This document shows positions 31,536-60,900 of a stretch of DNA of 64,000 nt, piece after piece. Within the stretch, counting starts at the first letter, position 1, and every line of letters starts with the position of its first letter. Source of the stretch: Macrostomum lignano (Eukaryota); NCBI GenBank assembly GCA_002269645.1, contig NIVC01000168.1, forward strand, positions 776,277 through 840,276, written 5' to 3'. A program made the position numbers and the translations under genes. A model generated the notes under the pieces. That model was given only the letters and a program-made list of their open reading frames with translations, did no database searches and had not been told where the DNA came from.

Positions 31536-36903
<5,368 letters not shown>

Positions 36904-39319: not shown

Positions 39320-42300
39320 TCACACGAACCCGACCGACTTGCAGCTGCCTGCGGAGTCCTCGAACTCGACTCCGGCCGGCCTCGGCGAGAAATTGGCCGC
39401 TTGAGAACGCCGGCCGACCGCCGACGGTGTCGCTGGCGAACTTCGAAGGCAGCCGCCGTTGGCCGCGCCTCGAATCAACGGCGAATCGCTTTCGGAAATT
39501 TCTGAAACACCCGGCTGTTGCTGTTGCTGCTGCTGCTGCTGCTGCTGGGGAAGACAGCGAAGCTGCTGCTGCTGCCGGAAGCTTCCGTCTCTGCCGGCCG
39601 CTGCTGCTGCCGCTGCTGCCGGCGGGCTCAAGGAGCCGTTGGAAGATTTTCTTCTTTTGTAGTAGGACTTGAAGTCCAGCTGCTGGGTGAACTCGGCCTC
39701 CTTCTTCTGCCGCTCGTATTTCCAGTTGTGCTCGATGACTGCGGATTGGAGTGCTGCAGCTGCTGCTTGTGAGTGTCACTTGAAGCTCCAAAACGGCTCT
39801 TTCAAGGGCCACTATTTTACTACGAAGACTACTCAAGTCAGGGGCGTCACCACCGGGGGGGGGGACAGGGGGACATACCCCCCCCCCCAGTAAGAGCTAT
39901 GGGGGAGACATGCTAATGCATTGTCCCCCACCCCACCTTTGTTGACCTGTTATGGAAATCAATAATTTTGCTTCAGGGAAACAAAAAATGAGTGCCTGCG
40001 GCGCTAAAATGAGTGCCTGCAGCGCTAAAATGAGTGCCTGCAGCGCTAAAATGAGTGCCTGCGGCGCTAAAGTGAGTGCCTGCAGCGCTAAAGTGAGTGC
40101 CTGCAGCGCTAAAATGAGTGCCTGCGGCGCTAAAATGAGTGCCTGCGGCGCTAAAATGAGTGCCTGCAGCGCTAAAATGAGTGCCTGCGGCGCTAAAATG
40201 AGTGCCTGCAGCGCTAAAATGAGTGCCTGCAGCGCTAAAATGAGTGCCTGCGGCGCTAAAATGAGTGCCTGCAGCGCTAAAATGAGTGCCTACGGCGCTA
40301 AACTGAGTGCCTACGGCGCTAAACTGAGCGCCTGCGGCGCCAAAATAATCGCTGACAGCACCATTATGAAAATAATGTACATGTAGGAATTTAGTCATGT
40401 ACACGAGCAATATGCAGAATTCTCTTGGCTTTGTCCCCCCCCCCACCATAAGATCCATGGCGACGCCCCTGACTCAAGTAGAAGGATGGGAAACTGCCGT
40501 TTCCTGGAAAATTTTAAGAGGCCGGCTTCTTACCGAAAAAAAACATCATGGATATAGGAGGTTTTCATTTTTTAAGACAAAATTGTTATTGCTTTTGATA
40601 GGAGCTAGGCAGACCCAATGTTGATAATTTAATATATATTTGTCTTTCCAATGGCTCTATTGATATTCATAGAACTTTTTGTTTAGAAAATTTGGATTCT
40701 ATGATAATTATATATCCTTAGTACAACCGCACAGGTCCAGTGCCTGAAAAACCATTAAAAATAAACATAAAACCAATGAGTCGAGCCGTGCCCATATAAT
40801 GGTTTTTAGGCACAGGACATTTACGTAGGTTATAAAACTAACACAATTTTCAAAACGAAAAGTACTATTAACATCAATAGAGCTATACTCGTATGATGAA
40901 AGGTAAGACATATCAAAAGATGAACATTGGATCTCTCTAGCTTCTATCAAAAGCAGTAACAATTTTCGTTAAATATTTATTTTTTTACTAGTTATTTATT
41001 AAATATTTATTTCGATATTGTCTTCCTATCGATTAACGAATGACGATGTGAAGCTGTCAAGAGATCAAATCCTTCATATGAAAGCTTCTTCCCATTGAAT
41101 TCTGAGTAAATTTTGAGTGAACCCGGTTGCTCACACTGGTAGTCGGGGTTCCTCGGTGCCCACCAAAATCTCTCCCAGCACAGCAGCGCGGCGAAGAGCA
41201 CGGCGAAGACGAACGCCAGCACCAGCAGGTGCAGCTGGTTGGTGAAGAACAGCGACTTGGCGATGCCCTCCGGCGACTTCGGGTCGTCGTACGGCTGAGG
41301 AGGCGGAATCGGAGTGACAGGAATCGGAGTGACAGGAATCGGAGTGACAGGAATCGGAGTGACAGGAATCGGAGTGACAGGAATCGGAGTGACAGGAATC
41401 GGAGTGACAGGAATCGGAGTGACAGGAATCGGAGTGACAGGAATCAGAGGAGTGACAGGAATCGGAGTGACAGGAATCAGAGGAGTGACAGGAATCGGAG
41501 TGACAGGAATCGGAGTGACAGGAATCAGAGGAGTGACTAAGAATCGGAGTGACAGGAATCGGAGTGACAGGAATCAGAGGAGTGACAGGAATCGGAGTGA
41601 CAGGAATCGGAGTGACAGGAATCAGAGGAGTGACTAAGAATCGGAGTGACAGGAATCGGAGTGACAGGAATCAGAGGAGTGACAGGAATCGGAGTGACAG
41701 GAATCGGAGTGACAGGAATCGGAGTGACAGGAATCGGAGTGACAGGAATCGGAGTGACAGGAATCGGAGTGACAGGAATCGGAGTGACAGGAATCGGAGT
41801 GACAGGAATCAGAGGAGTGACTAAGAATCGGAGTGACAGGAATCAGAGGAGTGACTAAGAATCGGAGTGACAGGAATCAGAGGAGCAGTGACAGAGGCCG
41901 GGTGCCGTGATGCTAATGTAGGATAAATTAGTAAAGCAGATTAATGAGGGGATGGCAAAGTCGCACGCAGAGGAGGCCTCAAAGCCGGTTCGTGCCCAAG
42001 TGGCTGTCCTAAGTCTCCGCGCTCAGCAAACATCACGGATCCTTTTCGTCTCGGGGGCAACACTTTTTTGCATTGACGAGCAGCTCATTTCTTAATCTAT
42101 TTAATCCTGCTCAGGCTCCGGATGAAGCATGAGATGGAGGCTGGCGCTGAGTTAAGGCTGTAACATCTGTTGCTTTCGCAGCAATTTCCGCTTCGAAGGC
42201 GAGCAGTGAATGACCGGAATAAACAAAAACTGCTCCAGCCTCACTGTTGATTGGGTTGAGAAGCCAGTGACCAACCGAATTTTGCGGCTTCATTCAATAA

Positions 42301-45300
42301 GTTGAGTTGCCAAGCTAAACATGAAAGCTAAGGTAGCCTCGGTAGCTAAAAAGCTAAGGTGGGCATGGGAGATGAGGCTGCTAGGGTAGAAGCAGCTGCT
42401 AAGTAGACCAGGTATGGTCAAGGCAACTGAGATGGACACGGAATTCCAAGTTAGACTAGATAGCCTATTATGTAGCTTTCGAGCCAGGGTAGCCAGGGTA
42501 GTTCAGGTAGCCAAAGTAGACAAGGTAGTCAAAGTAGCCAAGATAGTCAAAGTAGCCAAGGTAGCCAAGGTAGCCAAGGTAGTCAAAGTAGCCAAGGTAG
42601 TCAAAGTAGCCAAGGTAGCCAAAGTAGACAAGGTAGTCAAGGTAGCCAGGGTAGCCAAGGTAGCCAAAGTAGCCAAAGTAGCCAAGGTAGCCAACCAAAG
42701 TAGCCAAGGTAGCCAAAGTAGACAAGGTAGCCATATTAGACGAAGTAGACAAGGTAGACAAGGTAGCCAACCAAAGTAGTCATGGTAGCCAGAGTAGACA
42801 AGGTAGCCAAAGTACAAAAAAGGTAGACACGGTAGAAAAGGTACCCAAAGTAGACAAGGTAGACAAGGCAAGCCTATGTAGCTTAGTTAGCCCCTGACTC
42901 ACCGCGTCGCTGCCCTGATGTTGCAGCCCTACCAGGTCCGCCAACACCCTGTGCTGCCGGGTCACCAGCCAGTTGATGAGGCAGCCGGTGAGGCTGGGTC
43001 GCAGCCTCGTCAGCAGCCCCCGCACAGACGGCCTCTTCAGCACCATCTGCAGCTTGACGCCGGCCACCTGCAGCGGGTGCTCCTGGCGCATGTGCAGGTA
43101 CATGAAGTGCTCGATCAGGGCGCCGTAGTGACGGGCGGCCCTGTTGCCATGGGAAACACCGGCAGCGTCACTGGCATTGGCCGAGGCCGGCGGTGATGAG
43201 GCTGGGTGGTCCTGCGGCGGTTCGCTGCCCGAGTGCTGCCAGGCCTGGCGGCCGAACAGCTCGTCCAAGGAGTTCACCGCTGGGTTAAGGGGTCGGGGCG
43301 GGTCAGTCCGGGGAAATGGACGACTCAAAGTAGGAGGGGAGTGCTTCGTTCTTAGATAATCCTCATTTCAAAATGTTTCTTAGAAATTCTTAGAAAATCC
43401 GAAATATCTCAGTATCTCATTCAGTATCTCACTCGGTTTCTCACTCAGTATCTCACTCGGTTTCTCACTCAGTATCTCACTCGGTTTCTCACTCAGTATC
43501 TCACTCGGTTTCTCACTCAGTGTCTCACTCAGTATCTCATTCAGTTCTCATTCAGTTCTCATTCAGTTCTCACTCAGTCTCTCCCTCATCTCATTCAGTT
43601 CTCACTCAGTTCTCACTCAGTATCTCCCTCATCTCATTCAGTTCTCACTCAGTATCTCACTCATCTCATTCAGTATCTCACTCAGTTTTCACTCGGTTTT
43701 CACTCAGTACCACACTCAGTATCTCCCTCAGTATCTCAGTATCTCACTCACTATCTTACTCAGTATCTCAGTATTTACCTCAGTGTCTAACTCGGCGTCT
43801 CACTCAGTATCTCACCCAGTTTTCATTCGGTATTTCACTCAGTATCACACTCAGCATCTCACTCGGTATCTCACTCAGTATCTCACTCAGTATCCCAGTA
43901 TCTCACTCAGTATCTCACTCAGTATCCCAGTATCTGACTCAGTATCCCAGTATCTCACTCAGTATCTCACTCAGTATCCCAGTATCTCACTCAGTATCCC
44001 AGTATCTCACTCAGCATTTCTTAGTGTCTCTGTTTTTCAATGAACTGTCTTCTTTTTCTCGCCATTTTCCCGAGCTCTCTGCCTCCCAGACTCGGGCAGA
44101 TGCTTCAGCAGAGCCTGCCCGCCTCCTGTCTCGCAGTTTTTGCGCAGTAATTTTATTTGTCTAATCTTTTATGTTTCCCAGACCGCAGAAGCAAATCAAG
44201 GACTGGCCCGACAGTCAGGGCGAGTTTAGCAGAGAAAAATTTGCTGCTTTTACAATCCGACTGCGGAGCCTGTCTGCTAAATTGATGGCCCCGACAAGCC
44301 AAATACCAAAGTCTACCGGTGCAGCGGCTTACCGATGGGGTTCGAGCCGACTTCGTACACCAGTGTCTCCTCGAACGAGCCGTTCATCACCGTCATCTGC
44401 AGGTGCCGGCCGGGGCCAGTGAAGGGAGGGGTTGGAGAGGCCGGCAGTGCTGTGCGATCTTTCAGTTTGCCCCGACACGGATTCAGGGCTTCCAGGAATT
44501 GGTTGCTATGCTGGGTTCTTTGCGCGTCTAAATTATCGATATTGATGGGGAATCCCTTCAACAATATGATTTGGGAATTCCCTCGACAATATGATTAGGG
44601 AATTCCCACGTCAATATGATTTGGGAATTCCTTCGACAATATGATTTGGGAATTGCCTTCGCAAAAGTTATGTAATCCCTTTCACAAGAGTAGTAGGAAA
44701 TCCCTTTAAAACGTTAACCGGGAATCCCTTCAACAGGAACCGCTTCACAATGGGAATCCATTTCGCTAGAGCAGTGGGGAATCCCTCTGACAAAAGTAGT
44801 GGGGAATTCCTTGGTTAATGGGAATCCCTTCGACAAGGATGGAGAATCCCTTTCGCAATAGTAGTAAGGAATCCCTTCGAAAAGGTTAATGTGAAATTCC
44901 TTTCAAAGGATTAGTAGGGAAGCCCTTCGAAAAGTTAATGGGGAATCCCTTTTGCAAGATCAGTTGGTAATCCCTTGGTTAATGGGGAATCCGTTTTGCA
45001 AGAGTATTTGGGAATCTCTTCGACAAGGTTAGCTAGGAATCCCTTTATGCACGATTAATGGGGAATCCGTGCGTCAAAATATTCCAAAGAAGTGCCCTAC
45101 TCAGTACTTTTGAGGAATTGAGGAGAAGATTCGAAGGCCTTTGTAAAAGAATATTTAGAATTTAGAAAATATTTAGATTTTCAAAATGAAGAACAGGACA
45201 ATGAGAACACGGAAACTAACATTGGCCTGGAACAGTTTGGAGTTGTCAAACGACTGCGAGCTCTGGCCGAGCGCGGTGGTGATGCCAGCGGTGAACATGG

Positions 45301-46500
45301 AGGTGATCACCAGGCCGAAGCTGATCCACAGGAAGGCGAACAGCCTGCCGCAGATGGTCTTCGGCGAGCGGTCGCCGTAGCTGCGGGGTTCGAAATCGGA
45401 TGTCTGCTTTGGGGATCTCGGGTTGCTATGGGATATTTCCCGATTGGGGATCTCGGGTTGCTATGGGATATTTCCCGCTTGGGGATCTCGGGTTGCTATG
45501 GGATATTTCCCGATTGGGGATCTCGGGTTGCTATGGGATATTTCCCGATTGGGGATCTCAGGCTGCTGTGGGATATTTCCCACGAAAGTAATTTGGTATA
45601 CTAAGGGAGATTTTCCAATTTGGGATTCCATCGAGATGGAATTTCAGATTCCACAGACAAAATATCATTCATTCGATTTCTAGGTTAAGCAAACTGAGCA
45701 AAAAGGCGGCAGACAATTAGCAGGGAAGCTCGGAACTCGAGGAGTCATCAGATTGATCAGGCAGCTGGCAGTTGCAGCCCCTCTGTGCCTGGGGAAAAAC
45801 TTTGCCGTAGTGGGTGGTGGCTGCCAGCAGCTGACCTTAAATCATCTTCGGCTGCCTCGGGCAGCTGCGGAGCCCCCGGTGACCCCGGCATAGAAAACTT
45901 TCTCCACGCGACCCCGCGGTTAAACGAGTGAAGAATGGGCCTGGGATTCCCTTGCACCCTTCATTATCCCATGGGATCCGTCACAGTTTTGGGCTGCGCA
46001 CCGGCCGCTGCAGATTCTGCGCTGCACTGCCGCCTGCGAGCTGCTTGTACGGGGCAGGAATAGTAGGTAGGAAGAATAGGTAGAGTAGACAGATAGAGTA
46101 GATAGAAAGTAGACAGAGATAGATGACGGACAGAGAGAATTGACAGGGGGAGTAGACAATGAGAGTATACAGAGTAGACAGGGAGAGGGAAAAGGTAGGG
46201 AGAGTAGACAGAGAGAGTAGACAGAGAGAGTAGACAGGAAGAGTAGACAAGGAGAGTAGATAATGAGAGTAGACAGAGAGAGTAGACAGAGAGAGTAGAC
46301 AGAGAGAGTAGATAGAGAGTAGACGGAAATAGTAGACAGATATAGTAGACGAACAGAGAGAGTTGACAGGGAGAGTAGACTGACAGAGAGAGTAGACAGG
46401 GAGAGTAGACAGGGAGGGTAGACAGGGAGAGTAGACAGGGAGAGTAGACAGGGAGAGTAGATAGATAGTAGATGAACAGAGAGAGACGAACAGAGAACAG

Positions 46501-46560
<60 letters not shown>

Positions 46561-49500
46561 GAGAGAGAATTGACAGGGAGAGTAGACAATGAGAGTAAAC
46601 AGAGAGAGTAGAGAAGATACTGAGAATAGAGGTGAAGAGAAGAAGTGTGACGCTCACGAATCCAAATGAGGGAAAGAAGAAACCTCGGACTGAATGAATT
46701 TTCGCTAGAAAATAGCAGCAGCAAGTCACGCCAGCGAATGAATTTTCGCTAGAAAATAGCAGCAGCAAGTCACGCCAGCGCGCAGGCAGCCCGCAGGCGC
46801 TGCAGAGGGCATTCATCCCCGGTTCAAGCGGTGCTTCAAGCGGGGTTGCCAGGCACAGCAAAAAGAATGCCAGAATGCTTTGCAAAACGATATTTCTAAA
46901 CTCACCCCACGGTTGTCATGGTGATGAAGGCCCACCAGCAGCCTTCCCAGAAGCCGCGCAGGAAGGGTCTGGGAAATTCCTGGGGATTTTTCAGCCGCTC
47001 CTGAAATCCGAGACGGGGGAGGGGAGAGGGGATGCGAGAGGCTGCGTTTGATGAAGAGGGAGCCCCAGTGGCTTGCGGAAATTGGCTGGGAGATGACGCT
47101 GTTTCATGTCTGTCTGAATGCTAATCAGTCCTTGTAGCAGGTTATAAACCTGTCCAATAGGTATTCTATAGTAAGCTGTTCTAACAGTTTATAAGCGTGT
47201 CTAACAGGTAATACTTCTGTCTAACAGGTGATAAGCCTGTCTAACAGGTAATACTTCTGTCTAACAGGTAATAGTTCTGTCTAACAGGTAATACTTCTGT
47301 CTAACAGGTAATACTTCTGTCTAACAGGTAATAGTTCTGTCTAACAGGTAATACTTCTGTCTAACAGGTAATACTTCTGTCTAACAGGTGATAAGCCTGT
47401 CTAACAGGTAATACTTCTGTCTAACAGGTGATAAGCCTGTCTAACAGGTAATACTTCTGTCTAACAGGTAATACTTCTGTCTAACAGGTAATAAGCGTGT
47501 CTAACAGTTGATAAGCCTGTCTAACAGGTAATAAGCCTGTCTAACAGGTAATAGTTCTGTCTAACAGGTAATAGTTCTGTCTAACAGGTAATAGTTCTGT
47601 CCAACAGGTAATACTTCTGTCTAACAGGTAATAAGCGTGTCTAACAGTTGATGAGCGTGTCTAACAGGTAATACGCCTGTCTAATATGAAATAAGCCTGT
47701 CTAGCAGGTAATACTCCTGTCTAACAGGTAATAGTTCTGTCTAACAGGTAATACTCCTGTCTCTAACAGGTAATACTCCTGAACAGGTAATTCTCCTGTC
47801 TAACAGGTAATAAGTTTTTCTAGCAGTCAGCAAGCCTATCTAACAGTCAGCAGGCCTATCTAACAGTCAGCAGGCGCCAGTCCAGACCATGAGCCAGGCG
47901 ATGACCCCGGCGTAGGCGCAGGACACCAGGATGATGACCAGCAGTGGCCAGGCGTGAACCACGAAGTTCAGCTGCGAAAGGCCGGACTGGTGCGGCCGGA
48001 TGGTTGGGTCCAGCCACACTGCGCCTGCGGCGGTGGGTGAGGTGCGCAGTGGAATTAGCGAATACTCTGGGGAGGGCTGATGTTGATTCAGATATAAGAG
48101 AGTGACATTGAGAGTGACATTGACAATGGTACTTCGTACTGCACTGGTAGCGACATGTGAAGAGACACTTAAAACTGACACACACAGAGAGTGACATCAA
48201 TAGTTACACAGAGAGTGATATCGATAGTGACACAGAGAGTGAAATCGATAGTGACACAGAGAGTGACATAAATAGTGAGACACAGAGTGACATAAATAGT
48301 GACAAAGAGAGTGACATCAATAGTGAGACAGAGAGTGACATCAATAGTGAGACAGAGAGTGACATCAATAGTGAGACAGAGAGTGACATCAGTAGTGAGA
48401 CAGAGAGTGACATCAGTAGTGAGACAGAGAGTGACATCAATAGTGAGACAGAGAGTGACATCAATAGTGAGACAGAGAGTGACATCAGTAGTGAGACAGA
48501 GAGTGACATCAGTAGTGAGACAGAGAGTGACATTAATAGTGACATAGAGAGTGACATCAATAGAGACACAGAGAGTGACATCAATAGTGAGACAGAGAGT
48601 GACATCAATAGCGACATAGAGAGTGACATCAATAGAGACACAGAGAGTGACATCAATAGTGAGACAGAGAGTGACATCAATAGAGACACAGAGAGTGACA
48701 TCAATAGTGAGACAGAGAGTGACATCAATAGTGACATAGAGAGTGACATCAATAGAGACACAGAGAGTGACATCAATAGTGAGACAGAGTGACATCAATA
48801 GTGACAGAGAGAGTGACACAAAGGGCGACACTGAGAATGGCATTGAGGCTTCTAAATCGCTATGCACACAGAGTGAAACCTGGAGTGCCGGATCGATGGA
48901 AATGATGAGGAGTGACAGAATTGAATCGCCCCAGTCAGACTTGAGCGCACAATGGGCCCCATTGTCTCGTTGCATTGCTGCTCGCACTTTAAATATTTGC
49001 CCAAGCAGCTTCCTAGCGAACGGCCGATAACTGGGGCAGCGCCGGGACCCGGGGAAAGTCGTCGCAAGACGGCTCTGCCCCGGTGTTTCTCCTCTAAACA
49101 AAGTTAAGGACACGCGGATAACTGCGACCAAGGCGGGCGTGTGCCAGAGCCTGGAGCACCAATTCTTACCCTCATTCGCAGACACCGGTCTGGTTCCTCA
49201 TCTTATTAATTTGTCAAGCCTCCGCTTCGATTGAACCCATAATTTGGTTTGCGCCAGCTTCATCTTAGTATCCAAGCTCGCAAACCAGATTCTTCTTTAA
49301 GGGCTTCAAGCCTGCATTGCGGGAGGGGAGGAAAGCCGAAAAATGGATAGGTACATGTACAGGTATAACTGTGGGTCTGCGACTGCCTCAGGCCTGGTGC
49401 ATTGGACAAAAGCCAGCTGATGACGTTGGGAATGAAGGCCCTTGGGCAAACTTGAGTGTAGCGATGAAAAAATGCAATTTATCAGCTAATAAGGGCATCT

Positions 49501-52486
49501 AAGATCGATCTACGCTCGTATGATAGCCTACTCAGTGAATCCACTATGATAAAAATGATTTGTCGCTAGCCTAGGTTTAGGGTTAGGGTTAGGGTTAGGG
49601 CTAGGGTTAGGGCTAGGGTTAGGGTTAGGTAGGAGAGAATGAAGTGCAGTACCGTCGGATTACGACTACCGGGTCCCAACTGGCAAGGAGAGTGAGTAAG
49701 GGTGTATGAATAATCTTTGTCTCATCAGGGATACCTGAGGGCTAGGGTTAGGGTTAATATGGGTTAAAACTAACTGACATGTCATTTGGTCTCAAAGAAA
49801 TCGTGAGCATTTGTTTCTTAGAAAGACGCAAATTAGTATTAAAATCAGAATGGTCACGCTGTGGGCCACAAAACTCAACGCTACACCATCTGCTCATAAA
49901 TCTAAAAATCGAATGATGCGTATTCGAACTAGTCTAAAAGTACATTTTCAGCTGCGACATCAGCTTTATGGAGAGGAGTTTAAGCTTTCTGCAATAGCTG
50001 GGGTAAACTGAAATTGCCAGCAAAATATAACAAGCAGTGTGCACTCGGTGGGGAGAAGCTGCAAAAACATTTCGCTCCGCTGCGGGCAGCGTGTGTTTTT
50101 GCTTTTGCGTGCTGAACTTCCTACAGATTTTTGTATGGCATTGTTGACACCAGCAGTGTACATCTGTGCATACCAGCAGTGTACAGCAGTGTACATCTGT
50201 GCATACCAGCAGTGTACAGCAGTGTACATCTGTGCATACCAGCAGTGTACAGCAGTGTACATCCGTGCATACCAGCAGTGTACAGCAGTGTACATCTGTG
50301 CATACCAGCAGTGTACAGCAGTGTACAGCAGTGTACATCTGTAATGGTTTTATTCCTTGCCTTATTGGCAGTCATTGAACTGGTATCGTATTGACAAATA
50401 TTTTGCTGAATAATTGTAATGTACGTTCGCTCTCTCTATGTACATCGTTGACTCGCATAAATACATGTATAGCCATCACTGCCCCACGGGGCCTTCGTTG
50501 ATTTTTACACTGCCAAACACCGCACGTTACACATCTGTGCATAACAGCAGTGTACAGCAGTGTACATCTGTGCATACCAGCAGTGTACAGCAGTGTACAG
50601 CAGTGTACAGCAGTGTACATCTGTGCATACCAGCAGTGTACAGCAGTGTACAGCAGTGTACAGCAGTGTACAGCAGTGTACATCTGTGCATACCAGCAGT
50701 GTACAGCAGTGTACAGCAGTGTACAGCAGTGTACATCTGTGCATACCAGCAGTGTACAGCAGTGTACAGCGGTGTAAAGCAGTGTACATCAGAGTGCATT
50801 CAATGCACACCAGTGTACATCCGTGTACATCAGAGTACATTCAATGCAACAGAAATCCGTCACCTCATTCCAGTTGAGCATGGCAGCAACAATACAGACT
50901 GACCTCAATGGTTCGAATTCTCATTTCAAACGCGTGTGCAATAACTTTTTAATTTGAAATTCAAATTTTCAAACGGACCTTTCTGACTAAGCGGTCAAGT
51001 AAAGCGCATTTCAGCTGCTCTCTGCATCAGCCAATCAGGAATGCTGATGGAAATTCTTTATTGACAGTAGGGCTAAAGTATATAAAATATGCAATAAAAA
51101 TAGTGGAAAAATGAAATATGCCAACTTGTCTCGATAATTGGGTCGCTTGAAAATTGAGAGTCCCAACTCGTGCATAAATTAAATAAATTTCCCATCCAAA
51201 AACGGGTGCTCAAGAGATCCGATTTCAAGGCCTCAGACGGGTTCGAACTGGCGTGTGGGGTGCATCGGGGGTTTCAAATATCGATTCTCGGTATGAACTC
51301 GGAAATAATTCAATTCTATCGTGGATTTATGACCCGCTTCGGGGAAATTCCGACTGTCTGTCAGCGGGGGAATTTCGAAAAGCAATAAACTGTTGCGTTT
51401 TTTGCTGCGCACATTCTGAATCAGTTTTTCCTTGTTTCAATTTTGAAAACTATTTGAAAATAAGATCTACTGGCTGTTTTTTCTGAATTCCTGAATTTGT
51501 TTTTCAAGTTTTGGACATACTTGGTACAAAACTGGGGCACCGAAGTTCTGCACCCGCCACCTGCGGCGTCATGTCTTCTGCGCAGGTGTCAGGTGTGAAC
51601 TTCGCAAAGGGCAATTGTCAGGGATGGATTGGGGGCGATTCTCAGGGATGGATTGAGGGCGATTCTCAGTGATGGATTGGGGGCGATTCTCACTGATGGA
51701 TTAGGGCGATTCTCAGTGATGGGTTGGGGGCGATTCTCAGTGATGGATTGAGGGCGATTCTCAGTGATGGATTGGGGCGATTCTCAGTGATGGATTGAGG
51801 GCGATTCTCACTGATGGATTGGGGCGATTCTCAGTGATGGATTGAGGGTGATTCTCAGTGATGGATTGAGGGCGATTCTCAGTGATGGATTGGGGCGATT
51901 CTCACTGATGGATTGGGGCGATTCTCAGTGATGGATTGGGGGCGATTCTCAGTGATGGATTGAGGGCGATTCTCACTGATGGATTGGGGCGATTCTCAGT
52001 GACGGATTGGGGCGATTCTCAGTGATGGATTGGGACGATTCTCAGTGATGGATTGGGGGGGGGGGTTCTAAGGGGCGGATCGAGGTGATGCTTAGGGGCG
52101 GATTGAGGTGATTCTTGGAGCGAATTGAGATGGTTCTCAGAGGCGGATTGACAGATTCGCAGTCTCAGACACTTTTGCAAGCTCTCCGCCCCGGTCTCAC
52201 CCGGAGTGGTCACCACCGGCAGGAACTTGTGCTCGCTCAGCAGGCCAAACAGCGGCGCCTTCGCCACCGGCAGGCTGACATTGCAGCCCCGGGTGACCCC
52301 GTCGCTCAGCAGGTGGCTCTCGCTGGCGAAGGCGCGGTAGCGGAAGTCCAGCGGCTCGCCGCACTGCTGCAGGCCGGCCCGGGCCAGGTCCCAGAACACG
52401 CCTCGGAGCTGGCCGGCCACGGTGTCCGAGAACGGCGGGTGACCGAAATAGCAGACGGTCAGATTCTCGCTGGCTGGCGAGCCCAT
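39320..52486 (-). CDS. iGluR/GluR0-like ligand-gated ion channel with K+ selectivity filter (S1-M1-P-M3-S2-M4)
   Basis: Exons 52201-52490, 47888-48066, 46906-47000, 45221-45380, 44333-44396, 42903-43279, 41135-41294, 39320-39738, all phase-consistent (~580 aa). LTVCYFGHPPF...GVFWDL (SBP lobe), AWPLLVIILVS (M1), WWAFITMTTVGYGDRSPKT (pore), MFTAGITTAL (M3), VMNGSFEE (S2), LLVLAFVFAVLFAALLCWE (M4). The start codon is uncertain. Confidence 0.85.
39839..40471. mobile_element. hAT-type MITE, 633 bp, 8-bp TSD
   Basis: TIRs caggggcgtcacca / caggggcgtcgcca; TSD ACTCAAGT at 39831-39838 and 40472-40479. Confidence 0.9.
39985..40341. repeat. 21-bp tandem repeat (aaaatgagtgcctgc[g/a]gcgct) inside the MITE
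   Basis: Direct reading; about 17 copies. Confidence 0.95.
40576..40968. mobile_element. TTAA-flanked foldback element (~390-bp degenerate palindrome)
   Basis: aaaattgttattgcttttgataggagctag...ccaatgtt vs its inverse at 40921-40966. Inner IR gtgcctgaaaaccatta / taatggtttttaggcac. TTAA at 40572 and 40969. Confidence 0.75.
41306..41890. repeat. 15/17-bp minisatellite (gaatcggagtgacag)
   Basis: Direct reading. Confidence 0.95.
42480..42870. repeat. 9-bp repeat (gtagccaag)
   Basis: Direct reading. Confidence 0.93.
43405..44015. repeat. 12-bp repeat (cagtatctcact)
   Basis: Direct reading. Confidence 0.93.
44540..45070. repeat. Diverged ~24-bp minisatellite with conserved gggaat(t)ccc core
   Basis: About 20 core motifs at roughly 24-bp spacing. 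Confidence 0.8.
45410..45581. repeat. 36-bp tandem repeat
   Basis: gggatctcgggttgctatgggatatttcccgattgg, 4-5 copies. Confidence 0.93.
46060..46640. repeat. Purine-rich (gagagtagaca)/(GA)n tract
   Basis: Direct reading. Confidence 0.93.
47190..47875. repeat. 20-bp minisatellite (ctaacaggtaatacttctgt)
   Basis: Direct reading. Confidence 0.95.
48180..48820. repeat. 24-bp minisatellite (gagagtgacatcaatagtgagaca)
   Basis: Direct reading. Confidence 0.95.
49572..49760 (+). repeat. Interstitial telomere-like (TTAGGG/CTAGGG)n blocks
   Basis: About 9 units at 49572-49630 and a short block at 49740-49756. Confidence 0.85.
50150..50830. repeat. Compound cagcagtgta / catctgtgcatac repeat in two blocks
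   Basis: 50150-50342 and 50530-50830. Confidence 0.93.
51625..52150. repeat. 22-23-bp minisatellite (gatggattggggcgattctcagt)
   Basis: Direct reading; related to 55140-56040. Confidence 0.93.
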
Positions 52487-53599
52487 GGGCCTGTCTGTGT
52501 CTGTCTGTCCGTGTCTGCCTGTCTGTATCTGTTTGTCTGTGTCTGCCTGTCTGTGTCTGTTCGTCCGTGTCTGTCTGTCCGTGTCTGTATTGTCAATCAA
52601 GTTGGCCTCCAAGTCAAGCTGTCAACAATCGGGCCCATCCTGTCTCAGTTATATGGCTAAAGGGGGCGGCAATTCATGGTGAACGGAACGAATAGCGGAG
52701 GCAAAGCCGTACGCCAAGGGCCTTCAAACCCTGCGATTCTGCTCGGCTGGGGCTGCCGTCATTGGCTCGAACTTGGCTTGGCCAATCAAATGAAGCGAGT
52801 TGGCAGTTAGGAAAATTCGGCTTCGGCTCCAGTCGGCTGCAGCCCCCTTCCGATGCTTCTAAGCCGCGACAGTCAATCCGCGGTGCGCCAAGTCACTTCT
52901 TCGTTCATTGAGGCGTCTGGCTGGGCAACAGCGCAGCCAGGGGTCAGCAATCAAACTTTGGGTTATAACTGTGCTCATATAAGTTGTCACCACGGGGCAC
53001 AAAAACGTGCTCAAGCTCCGGTGTCGTCAGCAAAAATTGGCCTCATATCTTTATTGACTTTCTTCATTTCAAAGCTGGTTTATTCAGAATCATTTTTTAT
53101 TGACGAGAGATTTTCCAGACCTGGGCACTGGGCAGAGTCAGATGTCAAAGGCTTGACGATGGGTCATGGCTGATTGCTGCCCAGGAAGTCTTGCCAGAAA
53201 TGCGACCAGCTTCTTTAAGGAGCAAATCAATAGCCTTTGAGGTGACTTTGAGACTTAAAAATTGAACTTGGTGCTCGATTCCAAGTAGGAAGTAGGAAAT
53301 GAATAAGCTTGTCTTGGAGATCAGATTACTCAACCAGCACTGAGTCGAGTCCAGTTTAGGGGCGATTGTTCTAAAATCAATCGCGAAAATTCCAATTTAT
53401 AGACGGTAAAATTCCCGCCGCGAAACCAGCAGCGATCAGCAAGTGGCGGCTTCAATCCAACTCATAGCCACAGCTCTCCACTCTCCTCACCAGTCTTGCT
53501 TTCTGATTGTAATAAAAATTGTAACCACATGTATGTATTTTAATATATAATGTAGAGTGCATATAGTGTAACCCTAACTCTAATGATTATAGGCACCCT

Positions 53600-53760: not shown

Positions 53761-54319
53761 GTAAATATTATTGCTTTATGGCGGACTTTGCACTAAGATA
53801 GAGATGAATACATGTACGTTTCTCTAAACGGCTATTAAATCTGGATAACCTAGACTACTATAGTAATAACTTACCTGCACAGCAGTGCAGACTATATCTA
53901 GTGTACACACTCACGGCATCGCTACAGCCCACACAACTTCATTAGCGGCAACAGCAGTCGCATTCTAATCTCCTGTCTACAGAACCTAGACGAGTATTTC
54001 TGTTCTGCAGTAGCCATGCCAAAGCAATTTTCATTGATGGCGTTTTCTATACGCACAAGATTACGAGTATTCTCGTCTACTTAGCCGTTTTTTCTTTAAT
54101 ATGAATTTCGAATTCTCACAACTAATATCGCATACTTTTGGCTGAGTACAGCCATTGCTCGAACGTTTTTGACAGACTGAGACGGCGGATGAATGCAGAT
54201 AGAGGTTGGGGCGTGAGGAAGCTAGGAGGATGACTGAGAGATAGGTAGGTAGCTCCGAGGTGAATTTGCTAGGATGGAGACTAAGAGGGTCGTCAAGGAT
54301 AAGTAAGCCAGGATTAAGA

Positions 54320-54937: not shown

Positions 54938-57900
54938 TCAGGCGTTCTGCTCATCGCGCAGGGGAATCACGTAGCGCTGCGGCACAGCCAGCGAGGGCGC
55001 GATGCCTTCAGGGTAGGACGGGTCCTCGAAGAACAGCTGGTAGTCTTCGTGCACCGAGGTCGGCGGCTCGTCCACCAGGGCGCGGTAGAAGCAGGTGGTC
55101 TGCGGGTACAGGGCCAGCACCATCTGGCGCGGCGGGAGTGGGCGATTCTCAGGGGCGGATTTGGCGATTCTCAGGGGCGGATTTGGCGATTCTCAGGGGC
55201 AGATTGGGATGATTCTCAGGGGCGGATTGGGATTATTCTCAGGGGCGGATTGGGATGATTCTCAGGGGCGGATTGGGATGATTCTCAGGGGCGGATTGGG
55301 ATGATTCTCAGGGGCGGATTGGGATGATTCTCAGGGGCGGATTGGGATGATTCTCAGGGGCGGATTGGGATGATTCTCAGGGGCGGATTGGGATGATTCT
55401 CAGGGGCGGATTGGGATGATTCTCAGGGGCGGATTGGGATGATTCTCAGGGGCGGATTGGGATGATTCTCAGGGGCGGATTGGGATGATTCTCAGGGGCG
55501 GATTGGGATGATTCTCAGGGGCGGATTGGGATGATTCTCAGGGGCGGATTGGGATGATTCTCAGGGGCGGATTGGGATGATTCTCAGGGGCGGATTGGGA
55601 TGATTCTCAGGGCGGATTGGGATGATTCTCAGGGGCGGATTGGGATGATTCTCAGGGGCGGATTGGGATGATTCTCAGGGGCGGATTGGGATGATTCTCA
55701 GGGGCGGATTGGGATGATTCTCAGGGGCGGATTTGGCGATTCTCAGGGGCGGATTTGGCGATTCTCAGAAGGCGTATTTGGCGATTCTCAGGGGCGGATT
55801 TGGCGATTCTCAGGGGCGGATTGAGATGATTCTCAGGGGCGGATTGGGGTGATTCTCAGGGGCGGATTTGGCGATTCTCAGAAGGCGTATTTGGCGATTC
55901 TCAGGGGCGGATCGGGGTGATTCTCAGAGGCGGATTGGGGTGATTCTCAGGGGCGGATCGGGGTGATTCTCAGGGGCGGATTGGGGTGATTCTCAGGGGC
56001 GGATTGGGGTGATTCTCACGGGCGGATTGGGATGATTCTCAAGGACGAGTTAAACACAAGTATAGCGCAAAATCGATTCCAAAAATTCAAATCCGGAACC
56101 TCACCTCGCCCTTTTTAAAGATCGCCTCCGGGTTGGTCTCCGGGTTGGCCTTCCACAGCGGCAGGGGAATCACGCTGGTCTTGGGCAGCGAGTGCCGCCT
56201 ACAAGTCAAAATCCAGAGGCATCAGCTGAGTTAATTCAATGCGTGTCGGGGCTTGAGATGCGATCGGTGGGTCAGACAGATTGGCAGGAATGCAAAGTAA
56301 ACAGCGGCATGCTGGAGGCAGCGGCAGTGGCGCAAACCGTGATGACAGAAAAACTGAATCAAAATCTTCCCATGCGGACCAGGACCTCTGGATGTCTGAA
56401 CCAGGGACAGTCTCTCAGCAGGTAAGTATTTAGCGAAGGTTTGGGTCTGTTTCCTGTCCAGGTTTCTAGAGTCCTTGGTGCAGGGGTAAACATTTAGCGA
56501 AGGTGTGGGTCTGCTTCTAGTCCAGGTTTCTAGAGTCCTTGGTGCAGGGGTAAACATTTAGCGAAGGTGTGGGTCTGCTTCTAGTCCAGGTTTCTAGAGT
56601 CCTTGGTGCAGGGGTAAACATTTAGCGAAGGTGTGGGTCTGCTTCTAGTCCAGGTTTCTAGAGTCCTTGGTGCAGGGGTAAACATTTAGCGAAGGTGTGG
56701 GTCTGCTTCTAGTCCAGGTTTCTAGAGTCCTTGGTGCAGGGGTAAACATTTAGCGAAGGTGTGGGTCTGCTTCTAGTCCAGGTTTCTAGAGGTCCTTGGT
56801 GCAGTGGTAAGCATTTAGCGAAGGTGTGGATTCTGCTTCCAGTCCAGGTTTCTAGAGGTCCTTGGTGCAGGGGTAAACATTTAGAAAAGGTGTGGGTCTG
56901 TTTCCAGTCCAGATTTTTAGAGTCCTTGGTGCAGGCGTAAGCATTTAGCGAAAGTGTGGGTCTGCGTCCAGTCCAGGCCTCTAAAAGTCCTTGGTGTGGG
57001 TAAGCTCAAGGGCAATAACAGTCAGGCAATGCTTATGCACCAGAATCGATAGCATTAATAAAAAAAGCTAGTAAGTTAGCAGCACGCTAACTGTGAGAGT
57101 AACACGAGTACTTGGACCTGTCGGTTACTAAAGATATTCATTCAGAATTCTAAATTTAATCTAAGTTTAGATTAATAACAATTTTAGTTCTTATTTTTAA
57201 GAGTTTACATCAAGGTAGCTCAGACAGAACTGAACTGTTTGGTTCAAATTGGCGCGCAAAACTGCAAGCATGCAATCCGTTTAAACAAACGAGCGCGTCA
57301 GATCAAATATTTATGTACAAGGAAAACTAGCTAGCTAAGTGACACAAATATTTTAGGCTAGTTAGTATAACTGTACTACTAAGACAGAGGAGTGAGCAGT
57401 AGCATATGCGGCACCAGATTATGACAAAAATATTTTCGAGATTGGTTAAATGCAACAGCGAATGCACTTACTCCGGTCTGCTTTCCGGTTGAGGGACGAG
57501 TGAAGGGTGGAGCGGTTAGAAGTGAAATCAATGAGCTTTGCGTGTACATCATTGTTTGCTTAATTAAATATCATTCAGCCGTTAACTACATGAATCCGAA
57601 AATTATTATACTGCATTAAAAAAACTTGCAAATGAATCTACTATAAGTAGCTGATTGATCAACATGTTTGACTAGCAAGTGATGGGCACCAGATAAAGCA
57701 TGGAAACGGGACAGGGGACAGGGGTGCCAGATAAAGCATGGAAACGGGACAGGAGTTTCCAGATAAAGCATGGAAACGGGACAGGGGTGCCAGATAAAGC
57801 ATGGAAACGGGACAGGGGTGCCAGATAAAGCAAGGAAACGGGACAGGAGTTTCCAGATAAAGCAAGGAAACGGGACAGGAGTTTCCAGATAAAGCAAGGA

Positions 57901-60900
57901 AACGGGACAGGAGTTTCCAGATAAAGCATGAAACGGGACAGGACGTTTCCAGATAAAGCAAGGAAAACGGACAGGAGTTCCAGATAAAAGCAAGGAAACG
58001 GGACAGGAGTTTCCAGATAAATCATGGAAACGGGACAGGAGTGCCAGATAAAGCATGGAAACGGGACATGGGTGCCAGATAAATCATGGAAACGGGACAG
58101 GGGTGCCAGATAAAGCATGGAAACGGGACATGGGTGCCAGATAAAGCATGGAAACGGGACAGGGGTGCCAGATAAAGCATGGAAACGGGACAGGGGTGCC
58201 AGATAAATCATGGAAACGGGAAATGGGTGCCAGATAAACCATGGAAACGGGACAGGGGTGCCAGATAAACCATGGAAACGGGACAGGGGTGCCAGATAAA
58301 TCATGGAAACGGGACAGGAGTGCCAGATAAACCATGGAAACGGGACAGGGGTGCCAGATAAACCATGGAAACGGGACAGGGGTGCCAGATAAACCATGGA
58401 AACGGGACAGGGTGCAAGATAAATCATGGAAACGGGACAGGGGTGCCAGATAAACCATGGAAACGGGACAGGGGTGCCAGATAAACCATGGAAACGGGAC
58501 ATGGGTGCAAGATAAAGCATGGAAACGGGACAGGGGTGCAAGATAAAGCATGGAAACGGGACAGGGGTGCAAGATAAAGCATGGAAACGGGACAGGGGTG
58601 CCAGATAAAGCATGGAAACGGAACAGGGGTGCCAGATAAAGCATGGAAACGGGACATGGGTGCCAGATAAAGCATGGAAACGGGACAGGGGTGCCAGATA
58701 AAGCATGGAAACGGGACATGGGTGCCAGATAAAGCATGGAAACAAGTGCAGTTGCATACACAGTGACACGCAGTTCGCCTGCGACAAGTGCCTGCCAACA
58801 CAGACACAACTAGCCAAAAGCATGTCTAAACCAAAGACAAGAGCAGCACACAGCGAACTCACTCCTTGCCCTCCTCGGCATCCACATCGGCCACGTGGTA
58901 GCGGCCGTTGGTCCACTGGTACTTGATGACCTCAGCCAGGATCCAGTTGTCCTCGCCGTCCTCCCTCACCAGGGCGGCGATCTTGTCCCTGGGCTGGCAG
59001 ATGTAAGACGGGTCGGGGGCCCGGGAGCCGCACAGCGGGGGCGCCTCGTGGCCGGGTTCGCCAACCCACAGCGGCAGGGTGCGGGCCGCCTCCTGCAGCA
59101 GCGACATCAGGACGCCGCGGCGGACCACCGTCGGTGCGCTGTACTTGCTGAGCGACTCCTTGAGCTCGCGAATTTCAACGATCAAGTCGAGAGCCTTTTT
59201 TAGGCATCTGAGGGGTTGAGATATTTTTAACTAACAATTAACTAGCAGTTTATAAGCCAGTTCGATAATAATAACGTGAGAGAGAATCGGAGCCACTGAT
59301 CTCAGAACACGCACACGCTCACACAAGGTGTACACCCGATGAAAACGGTACCCAAGACAAAGAAGAGTCTCACAAAGTTACTTGCGTAGGGGGGCCGTAG
59401 CCGAGCGGTAGCGCAGCTGCTCTGGTGTGCCAGCGACCCAGGCTCGATTCCAAGTGCAGTCACATTAATTTGGGGCTGAATTGGAATCTCGACTTGGCTC
59501 TGCTCGTGCAACTGACGGCCTTGAGAGCCAACCCCCCAAGGCGCAGAGAAGTGTACATGCCTAACGATAATATAAAGTTAGGGCCGCTGTACACTCCTGT
59601 GCGAGTGTGTGCCTGCGTACGTATCCGCGCGCTTTTATGCCTGCTCAGGAGAGTCGGCGGAATGGGCAGTAATGCCTCTCGCCGGTTGTGTGCCTATGTC
59701 GCTTAAAGTGCGCCTCTAATAAAAAAAGTTAATTGCGTTGTTCCAGAGTTGTCTTAAAGTCATTGCAGGCAACACAGGTAAAGCAGGAAAGAAGTGACTC
59801 AATACGACTCTAAAACGAGATGTCACGGTACAAGTCGCCAAAACGTCGTCAAAGAATCACTTGAGAGTCAATCTGAGGCTTTTTATTGTCTGCGACTCTG
59901 AAACGACTCTGGGGCCGTAGAGTCACGTCTGAGGCACACTCTAGGCGCTTTAAGAGGCTGGAATCCATTTGCGGGACAGCGGACCCGAATTTCCCATCAT
60001 CAGACAGTGTAAACACTCTAGGCGCTTTAAGAGGCTGGAATCCATTTGCGGGACAGCGGACCCGAATTTCCCATCATCAGACAGTGTAAACACTCTAGGC
60101 GCTTTAAGAGGCTGGAATCCATTTGCGGGACAGCGGACCCGAATTTCCCATCATCAGACAGTGTAAACACTCTAGGCGCTTTAAGAGGCTGGAATCCATG
60201 TGCGTGAAGACCACGACAAGCCCAAGGCTGAGCTTCGTGCATACAGAAAGCAATGACTCTGCGGACTACTCAGCCCAAGCAGAAGACGTTGGCAAAGTGA
60301 CTAAAATTAAACTGCTAAGACTGGAGACAGAGACTGTCGGGTCAGATTACAAGCACAATTAGCAAGTGAAGTACTCACTCCTGCTCAGTTTCCGCATCGT
60401 TCATGGCCTGCATGTAGAGAGCCTGCAGCTTGTTCTTGGTCTGCGATTGGACTGTTCAATGATAAATAACAGGGCGGGCGGTTAGACAGGCTTGCGTTGT
60501 GCACGGGAGTCTGACACTTGAGCACTCAGCAGAACTGGTCACACAGGAGTCTGACACTTGAGCACTCAGCAGAACTGGTCACACAGGAGTCTGACATTTG
60601 AGCACTCAGCAGAACTGGTCACACAGCAGTCTGACACTTGAGCAGTCAGCAGAACTGATCACACAGCAGTCTGACACTTGAGCACTCAGCAGAACTGGTC
60701 ACACAGCAGTCTGACACTTGAGCACTCAGCAGAACTGGTCACACAGGAGTCTGACATTTGAGCACTCAGCAGAACTGGTCACACAGCAGTCTGACACTTG
60801 AGCAGTCAGCAGAACTGATCACACAGCAGTCTGACACTTGAGCACTCAGCAGAAACTGGTCACACAGCAGTCTGACACTTGAGCACTCAGCAGAACTGGT

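Follow-up and report, generated by a model that had tools for sequence, protein, structure and literature searches.

We analyzed a 64,000-nt stretch of Macrostomum lignano contig NIVC01000168.1 (the window; all positions given below are window positions) and describe a gene on its minus strand, running from 52486 to 39320, that encodes a protein with the segment order of ionotropic glutamate receptors (iGluRs) and the pore signature of K+ channels. Three-frame translation and inspection of every boundary gave eight exons, from an ATG at 52486 to a stop codon at 39322-39320, separated by seven introns that are all of the GT...AG type and whose phases are consistent throughout. Translated in order, the exons read as a binding-domain lobe (S1), a membrane helix (M1), a pore loop (P-loop), a second helix (M3), a second lobe (S2), a further membrane helix (M4), and a low-complexity tail; the interleaving of the pore domain between the two lobes (S1-M1-P-M3-S2) is seen in the exon translation, in the alignment, and in the separate homology of S1 and S2. 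GC content is 0.58-0.70 in the exons (0.72-0.94 at third codon positions [GC3]; 0.85 for the coding sequence overall) versus 0.42-0.50 in the introns. Because exon and intron composition differ in this way and the assembled protein has full-length homologues, the gene model is supported far beyond chance, and we are highly confident that the locus is a real single gene of S1-M1-pore-M3-S2-M4 architecture. The initial annotation, made from the letters of the DNA, had proposed eight phase-consistent exons with a selectivity filter split by an intron as GG/C (here and below, a slash marks the splice junction); both proposals are borne out, the end points it gave being the ATG and the stop codon, and the WWAFITMTTVGYGD pore, the MFTAGITTAL motif, a fourth hydrophobic segment (residues 387-417), and a poly-Ala/poly-Gln tail that it listed are all present.

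The first eight-exon model (52486-52201, 48066-47888, 47000-46906, 45380-45221, 44396-44333, 43279-42903, 41294-41135, and 39762-39320) encodes 587 residues, and a refined model in which two acceptors are shifted encodes 565. Judged by the paralogs and the family alignment, 48024 is more likely to be the exon 2 acceptor than 48066: it yields ..VVTTPGAVWLDP.., in agreement with PVLRTPGAVWLGP in paralog P0003 and with the family motif F-x-P-x-x-x-x-P-G. On the same grounds 39738 is the more likely exon 8 acceptor than 39762, yielding ..NPDYQFIEHNWKY.., which agrees with NPNYKFVERNWKY in paralog P0002.

In the refined model, exon 1 (52201-52486, minus strand, as are all the exons; GC3 0.92) contains the ATG and most of S1, with the strands and helix of lobe 1 in NLTVCYFGHPPF, GVFWDLARAGL, FRYRAF, NVSLPV, and KFLPVVTTP, and ends at a phase 1 donor (CGG/gtgaga). 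Exon 2 (47888-48024; acceptor ccgcag/GC) supplies the end of S1, the S1-M1 linker, and M1 (residues 117-141, VVHAWPLLVIILVSCAYAGVIAWLM); use of the alternative in-frame acceptor at 48066 would add 14 residues (EYSLIPLRTSPTAA). Exon 3 (46906-47000) encodes a post-M1 motif (ERLKNPQEFPRPF), the pore helix (FWEGCWWAFITM), and the TTVG half of the filter, and has a phase 2 donor (GG/gtgagt), while exon 4 (45221-45380) completes the filter with (G)YGD and continues through M3, the inner helix (residues 182-210, ending in MFTAGITTAL), to the start of the M3-S2 linker. The filter codons T170-T-V-G-Y-G-D176 (45371-46916, minus strand) are thus broken by the 1525-bp intron 3, reading ACC GTG GG/gtgagt ... 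ccgcag/C TAC GGC GAC, that is, TTVG/YGD. The first S2 strand (MTVMNGSFEETLVYEVGSNPI), with the family motif V-G-x-L-N-G-S-x-E, lies in exon 5 (44333-44396), and the junction between exons 4 and 5 (QAN/MTVMNGS) is backed by FFQTNITVINGSY in paralog P0022. Exon 6 (42903-43279) holds the bulk of S2, including an insert at residues 262-297 (36 residues, Macrostomum-specific, and disordered), the acidic motif YGALIEHFMYL, in which E303 occupies the family D position (84% D/E), and SVRGLL, which corresponds to the family Y-G motif. Exon 7 (41135-41294; phase 1 donor CAGT/gtgagc) encodes the S2-M4 linker and M4 (residues 394-413, LHLLVLAFVFAVLFAALLCW). Exon 8 (39320-39738, with the alternative in-frame acceptor at 39762) encodes the cytoplasmic tail and the stop codon; its junction is backed by both P0002 and P0052, and the tail opens with basic sequence (KYERQKKEAEF..YYKRRKSS) that gives way to poly-Ala, poly-Gln, and other low-complexity sequence.

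For residues 141-210 of the refined model, Pfam returns Ion_trans_2 (57 bits), Ion_trans (35 bits), and Lig_chan (35 bits); the Lig_chan match (PF00060, 34.7-35 bits) is above the gathering cutoff of 30.8 and recurs at E ≤ 0.01 in 41 of 41 members of the animal family described below. Because the pore dominates the score, phmmer and full-length profile searches of PDB sequences give only K+ channels among the 60 best matches listed, and in these alignments the pore helix and filter WWAFITMTTVGYGD are almost identical to K+-channel pores. The pattern WW-x-x-x-T-M-TTVGYGD, which agrees with the aligned K+-channel pores and presumably also with that of Shaker, is invariant in the 41 members. In M3, the gate motif of iGluRs, SYTANLAAF, is replaced by SMFTAGITTAL, and FTAGITTAL is also found in a bacterial GluR0-like protein (P0007).

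Hydropathy indicates three transmembrane helices, at residues 110-144, 181-210, and 387-417, in addition to the pore loop. The last of these, M4, has a hydropathy peak of 2.85 and a predicted local distance difference test (pLDDT) score of 81-91 in the structure model discussed below, and the segment is conserved across the family. Five N-x-S/T sequons fall in S1 and S2, and a strongly basic stretch follows M4. In relatives of the protein, signal peptides and CUB, Ig, fn3, TSP1, EGF, MAM, or F5/8C ectodomains stand directly N-terminal of S1; this fixes an iGluR-like topology in which S1 and S2 are extracellular, the P-loop dips in from the cytoplasmic side, and the C terminus is intracellular. 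A flipped, K+-channel-like topology with a cytoplasmic binding domain, prompted by the absence of a signal peptide in the window protein, was rejected on account of the basic post-M4 stretch and the extracellular domains ahead of S1 in relatives.

Since the pore dominates every search, it was removed before the lobes were analyzed, and S1 and S2 were tested separately. In HHalign comparisons, the animal S2 (135 sequences) matches the S2 of bacterial GluR0-like proteins with 95.7% probability (E = 1e-8) and the animal S1 matches its bacterial counterpart with 48% probability (E = 1.8e-4, 93 columns), while the crossed controls (S1 against S2 and S2 against S1) give probabilities of 0.2-0.3%. 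When S1 and S2 are joined by a GT linker and the resulting profile is run against the PDB, the top match is the ligand-binding domain (LBD) of a bacterial iGluR homologue (2pyy, E = 2.3e-4), with the Synechocystis GluR0 LBD (1ii5/1iit) at E = 4e-3 and further matches to an ancestral Gln/Arg-binding protein and to binding proteins of polar-amino-acid ABC transporters. The same profile reaches no eukaryotic iGluR LBD at E ≤ 10 in the PDB, whose entries we take to include the LBD of AvGluR1.

The S1/S2 assignment is also consistent with structure prediction. An AlphaFold model was made, with 37 aligned sequences, of P0052, a database protein that consists of the window protein plus extra segments added by the annotation. 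Its pLDDT scores are 75-91 in S1, 81-94 in M1-P-M3, and 75-93 in S2 outside the insert, and S1 and S2 show an alternating beta/alpha pattern; the exon 1 stretch corresponds to residues 83-177 of this model and scores 75-91 from about residue 91 onward, whereas all segments added by the annotation score below 50. In a Foldseek search the 50 best matches are all LBD-transmembrane domain (TMD) chains of AMPA receptors (GluA), at E = 4e-9 to 1e-7, with alignments spanning about 560-590 columns. For a relative, P0004, AlphaFold gives a good pore and S2 and a poor S1, and again the 50 best Foldseek matches in the PDB are all LBD-TMD chains, of GluA or GluN. S1 and S2 together are thus predicted to form a bilobed, type II periplasmic-binding-protein fold, and the earlier proposal that they are the lobes of a solute-binding protein holds up, both in the HHalign and profile comparisons with GluR0-type proteins and in the P0052 model, where the two segments do model as a periplasmic-binding fold with the scores given above.

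The protein belongs to a large family. An index-free HMMER scan that covered 1.84 billion cluster representatives retrieved 279 of them at E ≤ 1e-30, and for most of the 150 listed the match takes in the larger share of the module. Members with a named source belong to Nematostella vectensis (17 or more loci in the sample), to the corals Montipora, Pocillopora, and Oculina, to the hemichordates Saccoglossus kowalevskii and Glandiceps talaboti, and to M. lignano; outside the animal family the closest sequence relatives are bacterial GluR0-type proteins, at E of about 1e-17. A stand-alone S1-M1-P-M3-S2-M4 protein is the form found in the great majority of about 159 representatives (median length 486 residues), typical members having 450-550 residues with a signal peptide and a Cys-rich leader; in others the module sits behind CUB plus Ig, fn3 arrays, TSP1, LamG, MAM, F5/8C, or EGF domains, in proteins that reach more than 4,000 residues. 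The exact TTVGYGD sequence is present in 133 of the 159 representatives and a GYG filter in about 155, and T170, T171, G173, Y174, G175, and D176 are invariant in the 41-sequence alignment. Two members, P0004 and P0005, are uninterrupted open reading frames (ORFs) on 2.8-6.4-kb Logan contigs, which are probably transcript assemblies, so that in these relatives the modules are probably co-transcribed. In P0063, P0077, P0080, P0061, P0060, and P0021 (from Nematostella, Oculina, and others), the module lies C-terminal to huge ectodomains, including TLDc, and the sequences of such relatives suggest adhesion- or matrix-coupled K+ channels.

Family members are labeled either "uncharacterized" or with names taken from other domains, such as "Potassium channel domain-containing," "sidekick-1," "PTPRQ-like," and "Kv subfamily B member 2." The initial description of a poorly characterized family therefore fits a group that is both real and large, and a check for a well-studied orthologue turned up none, only uncharacterized or misnamed members and no paper. 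No description of the family appeared in the literature searched, which excludes subscription-only papers, so its absence from the literature is unproven; a large metazoan iGluR phylogeny mentions neither GluR0, potassium, nor AvGluR1 (PMC6307864).

Set beside known systems, the window protein is closest in layout to GluR0 (Synechocystis Slr1257) and other bacterial GluR0-type proteins (SBP_bac_3 plus Lig_chan plus Ion_trans_2). It shares with them the lack of an amino-terminal domain (ATD), the S1-M1-P-M2/M3-S2 order, the TXVGYG filter, the type of binding domain (the S1S2 profile reaches GluR0 LBD structures first), and the FTAGITTAL gate motif seen in P0007. Unlike them, it is a eukaryotic protein whose gene carries seven spliceosomal introns, it extends beyond S2 into M4 and a long cytoplasmic tail, and its binding domain is too diverged for Pfam SBP_bac_3 and appears not to conserve the carboxylate-binding Arg; it consequently lies outside a class defined by two transmembrane helices and a P-loop, no M4, and prokaryotic origin. 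With AvGluR1 it has in common that it is an animal iGluR-superfamily subunit with M4 and TXVGYG (PMC12332018, PMC11479355), but it lacks both the ATD and a canonical eukaryotic LBD, the comparison being with AvGluR1 as defined in those two papers; an AvGluR1-type class, in which an ATD accompanies TXVGYG, thus does not hold a protein in which TXVGYG and M4 are present and the ATD is absent. The account of GluR0 and AvGluR1 given in the initial annotation agrees with this literature (PMC12332018, PMC11479355).

Canonical animal iGluRs (AMPA, kainate, delta, NMDA, epsilon, and lambda) share with the window protein the LBD-TMD fold, the S1-M1-M2-M3-S2-M4 order, and a Lig_chan match above cutoff, and GluA and GluN chains are the best Foldseek matches of both family models. 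The window protein differs from them in having no ATD, a K+-channel filter where they have the Q/R/N-site loop, FTAGITTAL instead of SYTANLAAF, no Lig_chan-Glu_bd or SBP match, and only 11%-13% identity in structural alignments. Of the hallmarks of canonical eukaryotic iGluRs as a wider class that includes plant GLRs, it has M4 but neither the ATD nor SYTANLAAF. With two-transmembrane and voltage-gated K+ channels (KcsA, Lmo2059, Shaker/Kv), it shares a nearly identical WWAFITMTTVGYGD and its best PDB sequence matches; unlike in those channels, S1 and S2 lie on either side of the pore, which by the family evidence is upside-down with extracellular flanks, and a voltage sensor, an RCK or T1 domain, and any other K+-channel gating domain are lacking.

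The reading that we favor, with reasonable but far from complete confidence, is that the locus encodes a "GluR0-like plus M4" subunit of an iGluR-superfamily channel, probably a ligand-gated K+ channel. The steps by which such a channel would work are drawn from the established mechanism of iGluRs and GluR0. Four subunits would form the pore. In each, S1 and S2 make up a two-lobed extracellular clamshell resembling periplasmic amino-acid-binding proteins, into which an inverted two-helix pore (M1, re-entrant P-loop, M3) with a Shaker/KcsA-like pore helix and filter is inserted; M4 and a cytoplasmic tail that is basic and of low complexity complete the subunit, which has no amino-terminal domain. 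A small extracellular ligand would close the clamshell, closure would pull on the S1-M1, M3-S2, and S2-M4 linkers and so open the M3 bundle crossing at FTAGITTAL, and K+ would then leave the cell and hyperpolarize it. Judged by the architecture, gating by a ligand is more probable than not. The analysis establishes how the gene is built, the order of its domains, the homology of pore, S1, and S2, their fold, the family to which the protein belongs, and the conservation of the filter within it; the tetrameric assembly, the gating by a ligand, the selectivity for K+, and the inhibitory effect are inferred.

Several observations weigh against this reading. A TXVGYG sequence is no guarantee of K+ selectivity, given that AvGluR1 is described as Na+-permeable in a review (PMC3483616) and as K+-selective in PMC11479355. 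No Pfam binding-domain model (SBP_bac_3 or Lig_chan-Glu_bd) matches S1/S2 in any of the 41 members, and the carboxylate-binding Arg of iGluRs and GluR0 appears not to be conserved in the family. The Macrostomum protein itself alters S1 residues that the family conserves, namely the second and third Cys of CCGxC, D69 (now Asn), and the Tyr of the Y-G motif (now Arg). The Foldseek TM-scores of the P0052 model are modest (0.35-0.43, normalized to targets that are LBD-TMD-only chains of ~400 residues); together with a large root-mean-square deviation and 11%-13% sequence identity, they indicate a shared architecture but remote rather than close kinship. S1 has no signal peptide ahead of it, and the single upstream ORF that resembles one runs into a stop codon within the window. 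Finally, for the gene in the window, homology is the basis both for co-transcription and for the exact choice of acceptor at exons 2 and 8.

The first of these points raises an alternative that is unlikely but deserves serious weight: the same ligand-gated protein could have a non-selective or weakly selective cation pore despite TTVGYGD and act as an excitatory or leak channel, like canonical iGluRs. In the iGluR topology the filter is upside-down at the cytoplasmic end of the pore, a setting in which K+ selectivity has been demonstrated for GluR0 alone (PMC12332018). Set against this are the presence of the whole Kv-type signature rather than GYG alone, its invariance across the 41 members, and the retention of GYG in about 155 of the 159 representatives, which argues for selection on the filter; in addition, GluR0, whose topology is the same, is K+-selective, as is a synthetic GluA1-Kcv chimera (PMC12332018). 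Because family-wide constraint on the complete WW...TMTTVGYGD signature is strong and GluR0, with its pore in the same orientation, selects for K+ (PMC12332018), we consider the channel of the favored reading likely to be K+-selective.

What the clamshell would bind is less clear-cut. No S1 position is ≥60% Arg/Lys across the 135 members, and in HHalign the partner of the bacterial carboxylate-binding Arg is a Leu in the window protein, at a place where the S1 alignment is of low confidence. By contrast, the family as a whole conserves two acidic positions in the cleft that correspond to ligand contacts in iGluRs: G-S-x-E is 86% D/E and G-x-L-x-D is 84% D/E (Glu in the window protein). Because the two acidic positions are conserved while the Arg appears not to be, an amino acid is not the first ligand to expect, and this pattern hints, weakly, at an amine or a cationic compound as a possible ligand in preference to an alpha-amino acid.

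It is distinctly unlikely, in our estimation, that the clamshell no longer binds a small diffusible ligand at all, leaving a K+ channel that is constitutive or otherwise regulated (by ions, pH, a protein partner, or adhesion/matrix) or a silent or auxiliary subunit. Such a protein would be in keeping with the apparent lack of a conserved S1 Arg, the absence of a Pfam SBP/LBD match in the 41 members, the loss of several family-conserved S1 residues and the 36-residue disordered S2 insert in Macrostomum, and cnidarian relatives of up to about 4,000 residues in which the module is fused to fn3, TSP1, EGF, MAM, or CUB arrays. Yet the clamshell has been kept and is confidently folded in the model, its cleft positions are conserved, and the interleaved S1/S2 arrangement persists in hundreds of lineages, which is most simply explained by gating.

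At the N terminus, S1 begins 8 residues past the first Met, with no amino-terminal (LIVBP-like) domain, and in the absence of a signal peptide the export of an N-terminal domain of ~115 residues is unexplained. Paralog P0003 starts at the equivalent Met, just ahead of the NLTV strand. A candidate 5' exon lies at 53873-53963 (minus strand), where a signal-peptide-like ORF (MRLLLPLMKLCGL) of high GC3 starts at 53963 and is stopped by TAG, after which the sequence continues to ..SLHCCA and a consensus CAG/gtaagt donor. P0052 reads through this segment (..CGLYDAVIHSLHCCADRPMGSP..), so its source sequence must differ from the window by indels of 1, 5, and 7 nt, even though 563 residues farther downstream are identical. 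The segment may be the genuine 5' exon, disrupted or wrongly assembled in this sequence, or an artifact of gene prediction, and it may not belong to the gene. Three explanations for the absent signal peptide remain: M1 may act as a reverse signal-anchor, the 5' exon may be broken or mis-assembled, or this copy may be defective.

The last of these would make the gene a decaying, non-functional duplicate in the partly duplicated M. lignano genome, an N-terminally truncated relic that never forms a surface channel. Besides the missing signal peptide and the TAG in the upstream signal-peptide-like ORF, such decay would account for the lost extracellular Cys motif and the low-complexity inserts, and no identical or near-identical transcript-derived protein is found among the matches of the protein database searches. 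We regard it as very unlikely. The eight exons are open, with intact splice sites and very high GC3, and P0001, a homeolog or allele, differs at 6 of 347 comparable residues (98% identity, residues 27-373), none of them in the pore. The more distant paralogs P0003, P0002, and P0022 (about 40%-52% identity) retain the same architecture, P0003 with its start at the equivalent Met.

The closest database matches of the channel protein are M. lignano proteins, and the gene is itself already in UniProt, mis-modeled and misnamed. UniProt A0A1I8J4Y3 (P0052, 976 residues) is identical to the refined model at 563 of 565 residues once two inserted segments are removed; it is called an "SGF29 C-terminal domain-containing protein," since its model is fused to the upstream SGF29 tudor gene, and it further contains two extra in-frame segments and ~200 unrelated C-terminal residues. 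The two extra coding segments, 49091-48942 and 44555-44397 (the latter a 159-nt upstream extension of exon 5 with a GC3 of 0.60), were rejected as probable intron: they occur in neither the paralogs nor any relative, their GC3 is 0.60-0.62 as against 0.72-0.94 in the exons, and their pLDDT is below 50. The C-terminal ~200 residues (..TDDPAQCK) map to 32800-36900 (minus strand), 2.4-6.5 kb past the channel stop codon, and resemble translated non-coding or antisense sequence.

The SGF29 tudor-domain gene lies directly upstream on the same strand (54941-59230, minus), with exons at 59230-58862 and 55192-54941 and its own stop codon at 54941-54943. The models of P0052 and P0001 both join its tudor exons to the channel exons and to downstream sequence, and the product was named after SGF29. 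That two UniProt models make this junction is the one observation favoring the view that the channel exons are not an independent gene, either as parts of a longer SGF29-containing transcript or as a chance juxtaposition, and we consider this extremely unlikely: SGF29 ends in its own stop codon, the module is stand-alone in the great majority of the ~159 relatives, and the segments found only in the models have low GC3 and pLDDT below 50. We accordingly regard the joins as errors.

The channel gene sits between flatworm genes. At ~15660-28670 (plus strand) is a large multi-exon PKD1-like gene, a second and unrelated cation-channel gene, with PKD and REJ domains at 18856-21282 and Polycystin_dom and PKD_channel domains at 27155-28669. 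A retrotransposon occupies 11070-14987 (minus strand), with gag-like DUF7041, reverse transcriptase, RNase H, and integrase ORFs, those of the pol region overlapping in different frames, and at 4914-7055 (plus strand) there is an uninterrupted 713-residue ORF with a Cys/His-rich N terminus and no Pfam match, which may encode a domesticated or mobile-element protein. Micro- and minisatellites are dense in introns and flanks (52490-52600, 48160-48800, 45980-46750, 41300-41880, 49970-50840, and 57670-58830), an (ACAGAC)n repeat stands directly 5' of the channel start codon, and long satellite arrays generate spurious ORFs of 100-400 residues on both strands.

In the accepted account of iGluR origin, a K+-channel pore was inserted into a bacterial binding protein, M4 and the ATD were added later, and K+ selectivity was lost. 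This account rests on very few living intermediates, GluR0 and AvGluR1. The gene described here is a K+-signature iGluR-superfamily channel that is present but mis-annotated in sequence databases, and its family, unnamed and unstudied, numbers hundreds of animal proteins in which a binding domain of the GluR0 type and an intact Kv-type filter are retained and M4 has already been gained. Because UniProt and NCBI entries are mis-fused or misnamed (SGF29 domain protein, sidekick-1, PTPRQ-like, Kv2-like), surveys by name or with LBD Pfam models miss the family. Its mixture of features makes testable both the order of the steps in iGluR origin and the question whether animals use K+-selective, hyperpolarizing receptors of the iGluR type, and tractable systems are at hand in Macrostomum (RNA interference, transgenesis, and cell atlases) and Nematostella. 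Tentatively, and with more doubt than we attach to the nature of the gene itself, the family may represent a large, overlooked, and ancient branch of the iGluR superfamily in animals, shared by cnidarians, hemichordates, and flatworms, whose members serve as fast, ligand-gated, K+-selective inhibitory receptors for a transmitter or environmental cue other than a classical alpha-amino acid. If so, they would join the Cys-loop Cl- channels as a further, new class of ionotropic receptors that inhibit, and would be a living intermediate in which M4 was gained before the K+ filter was lost.

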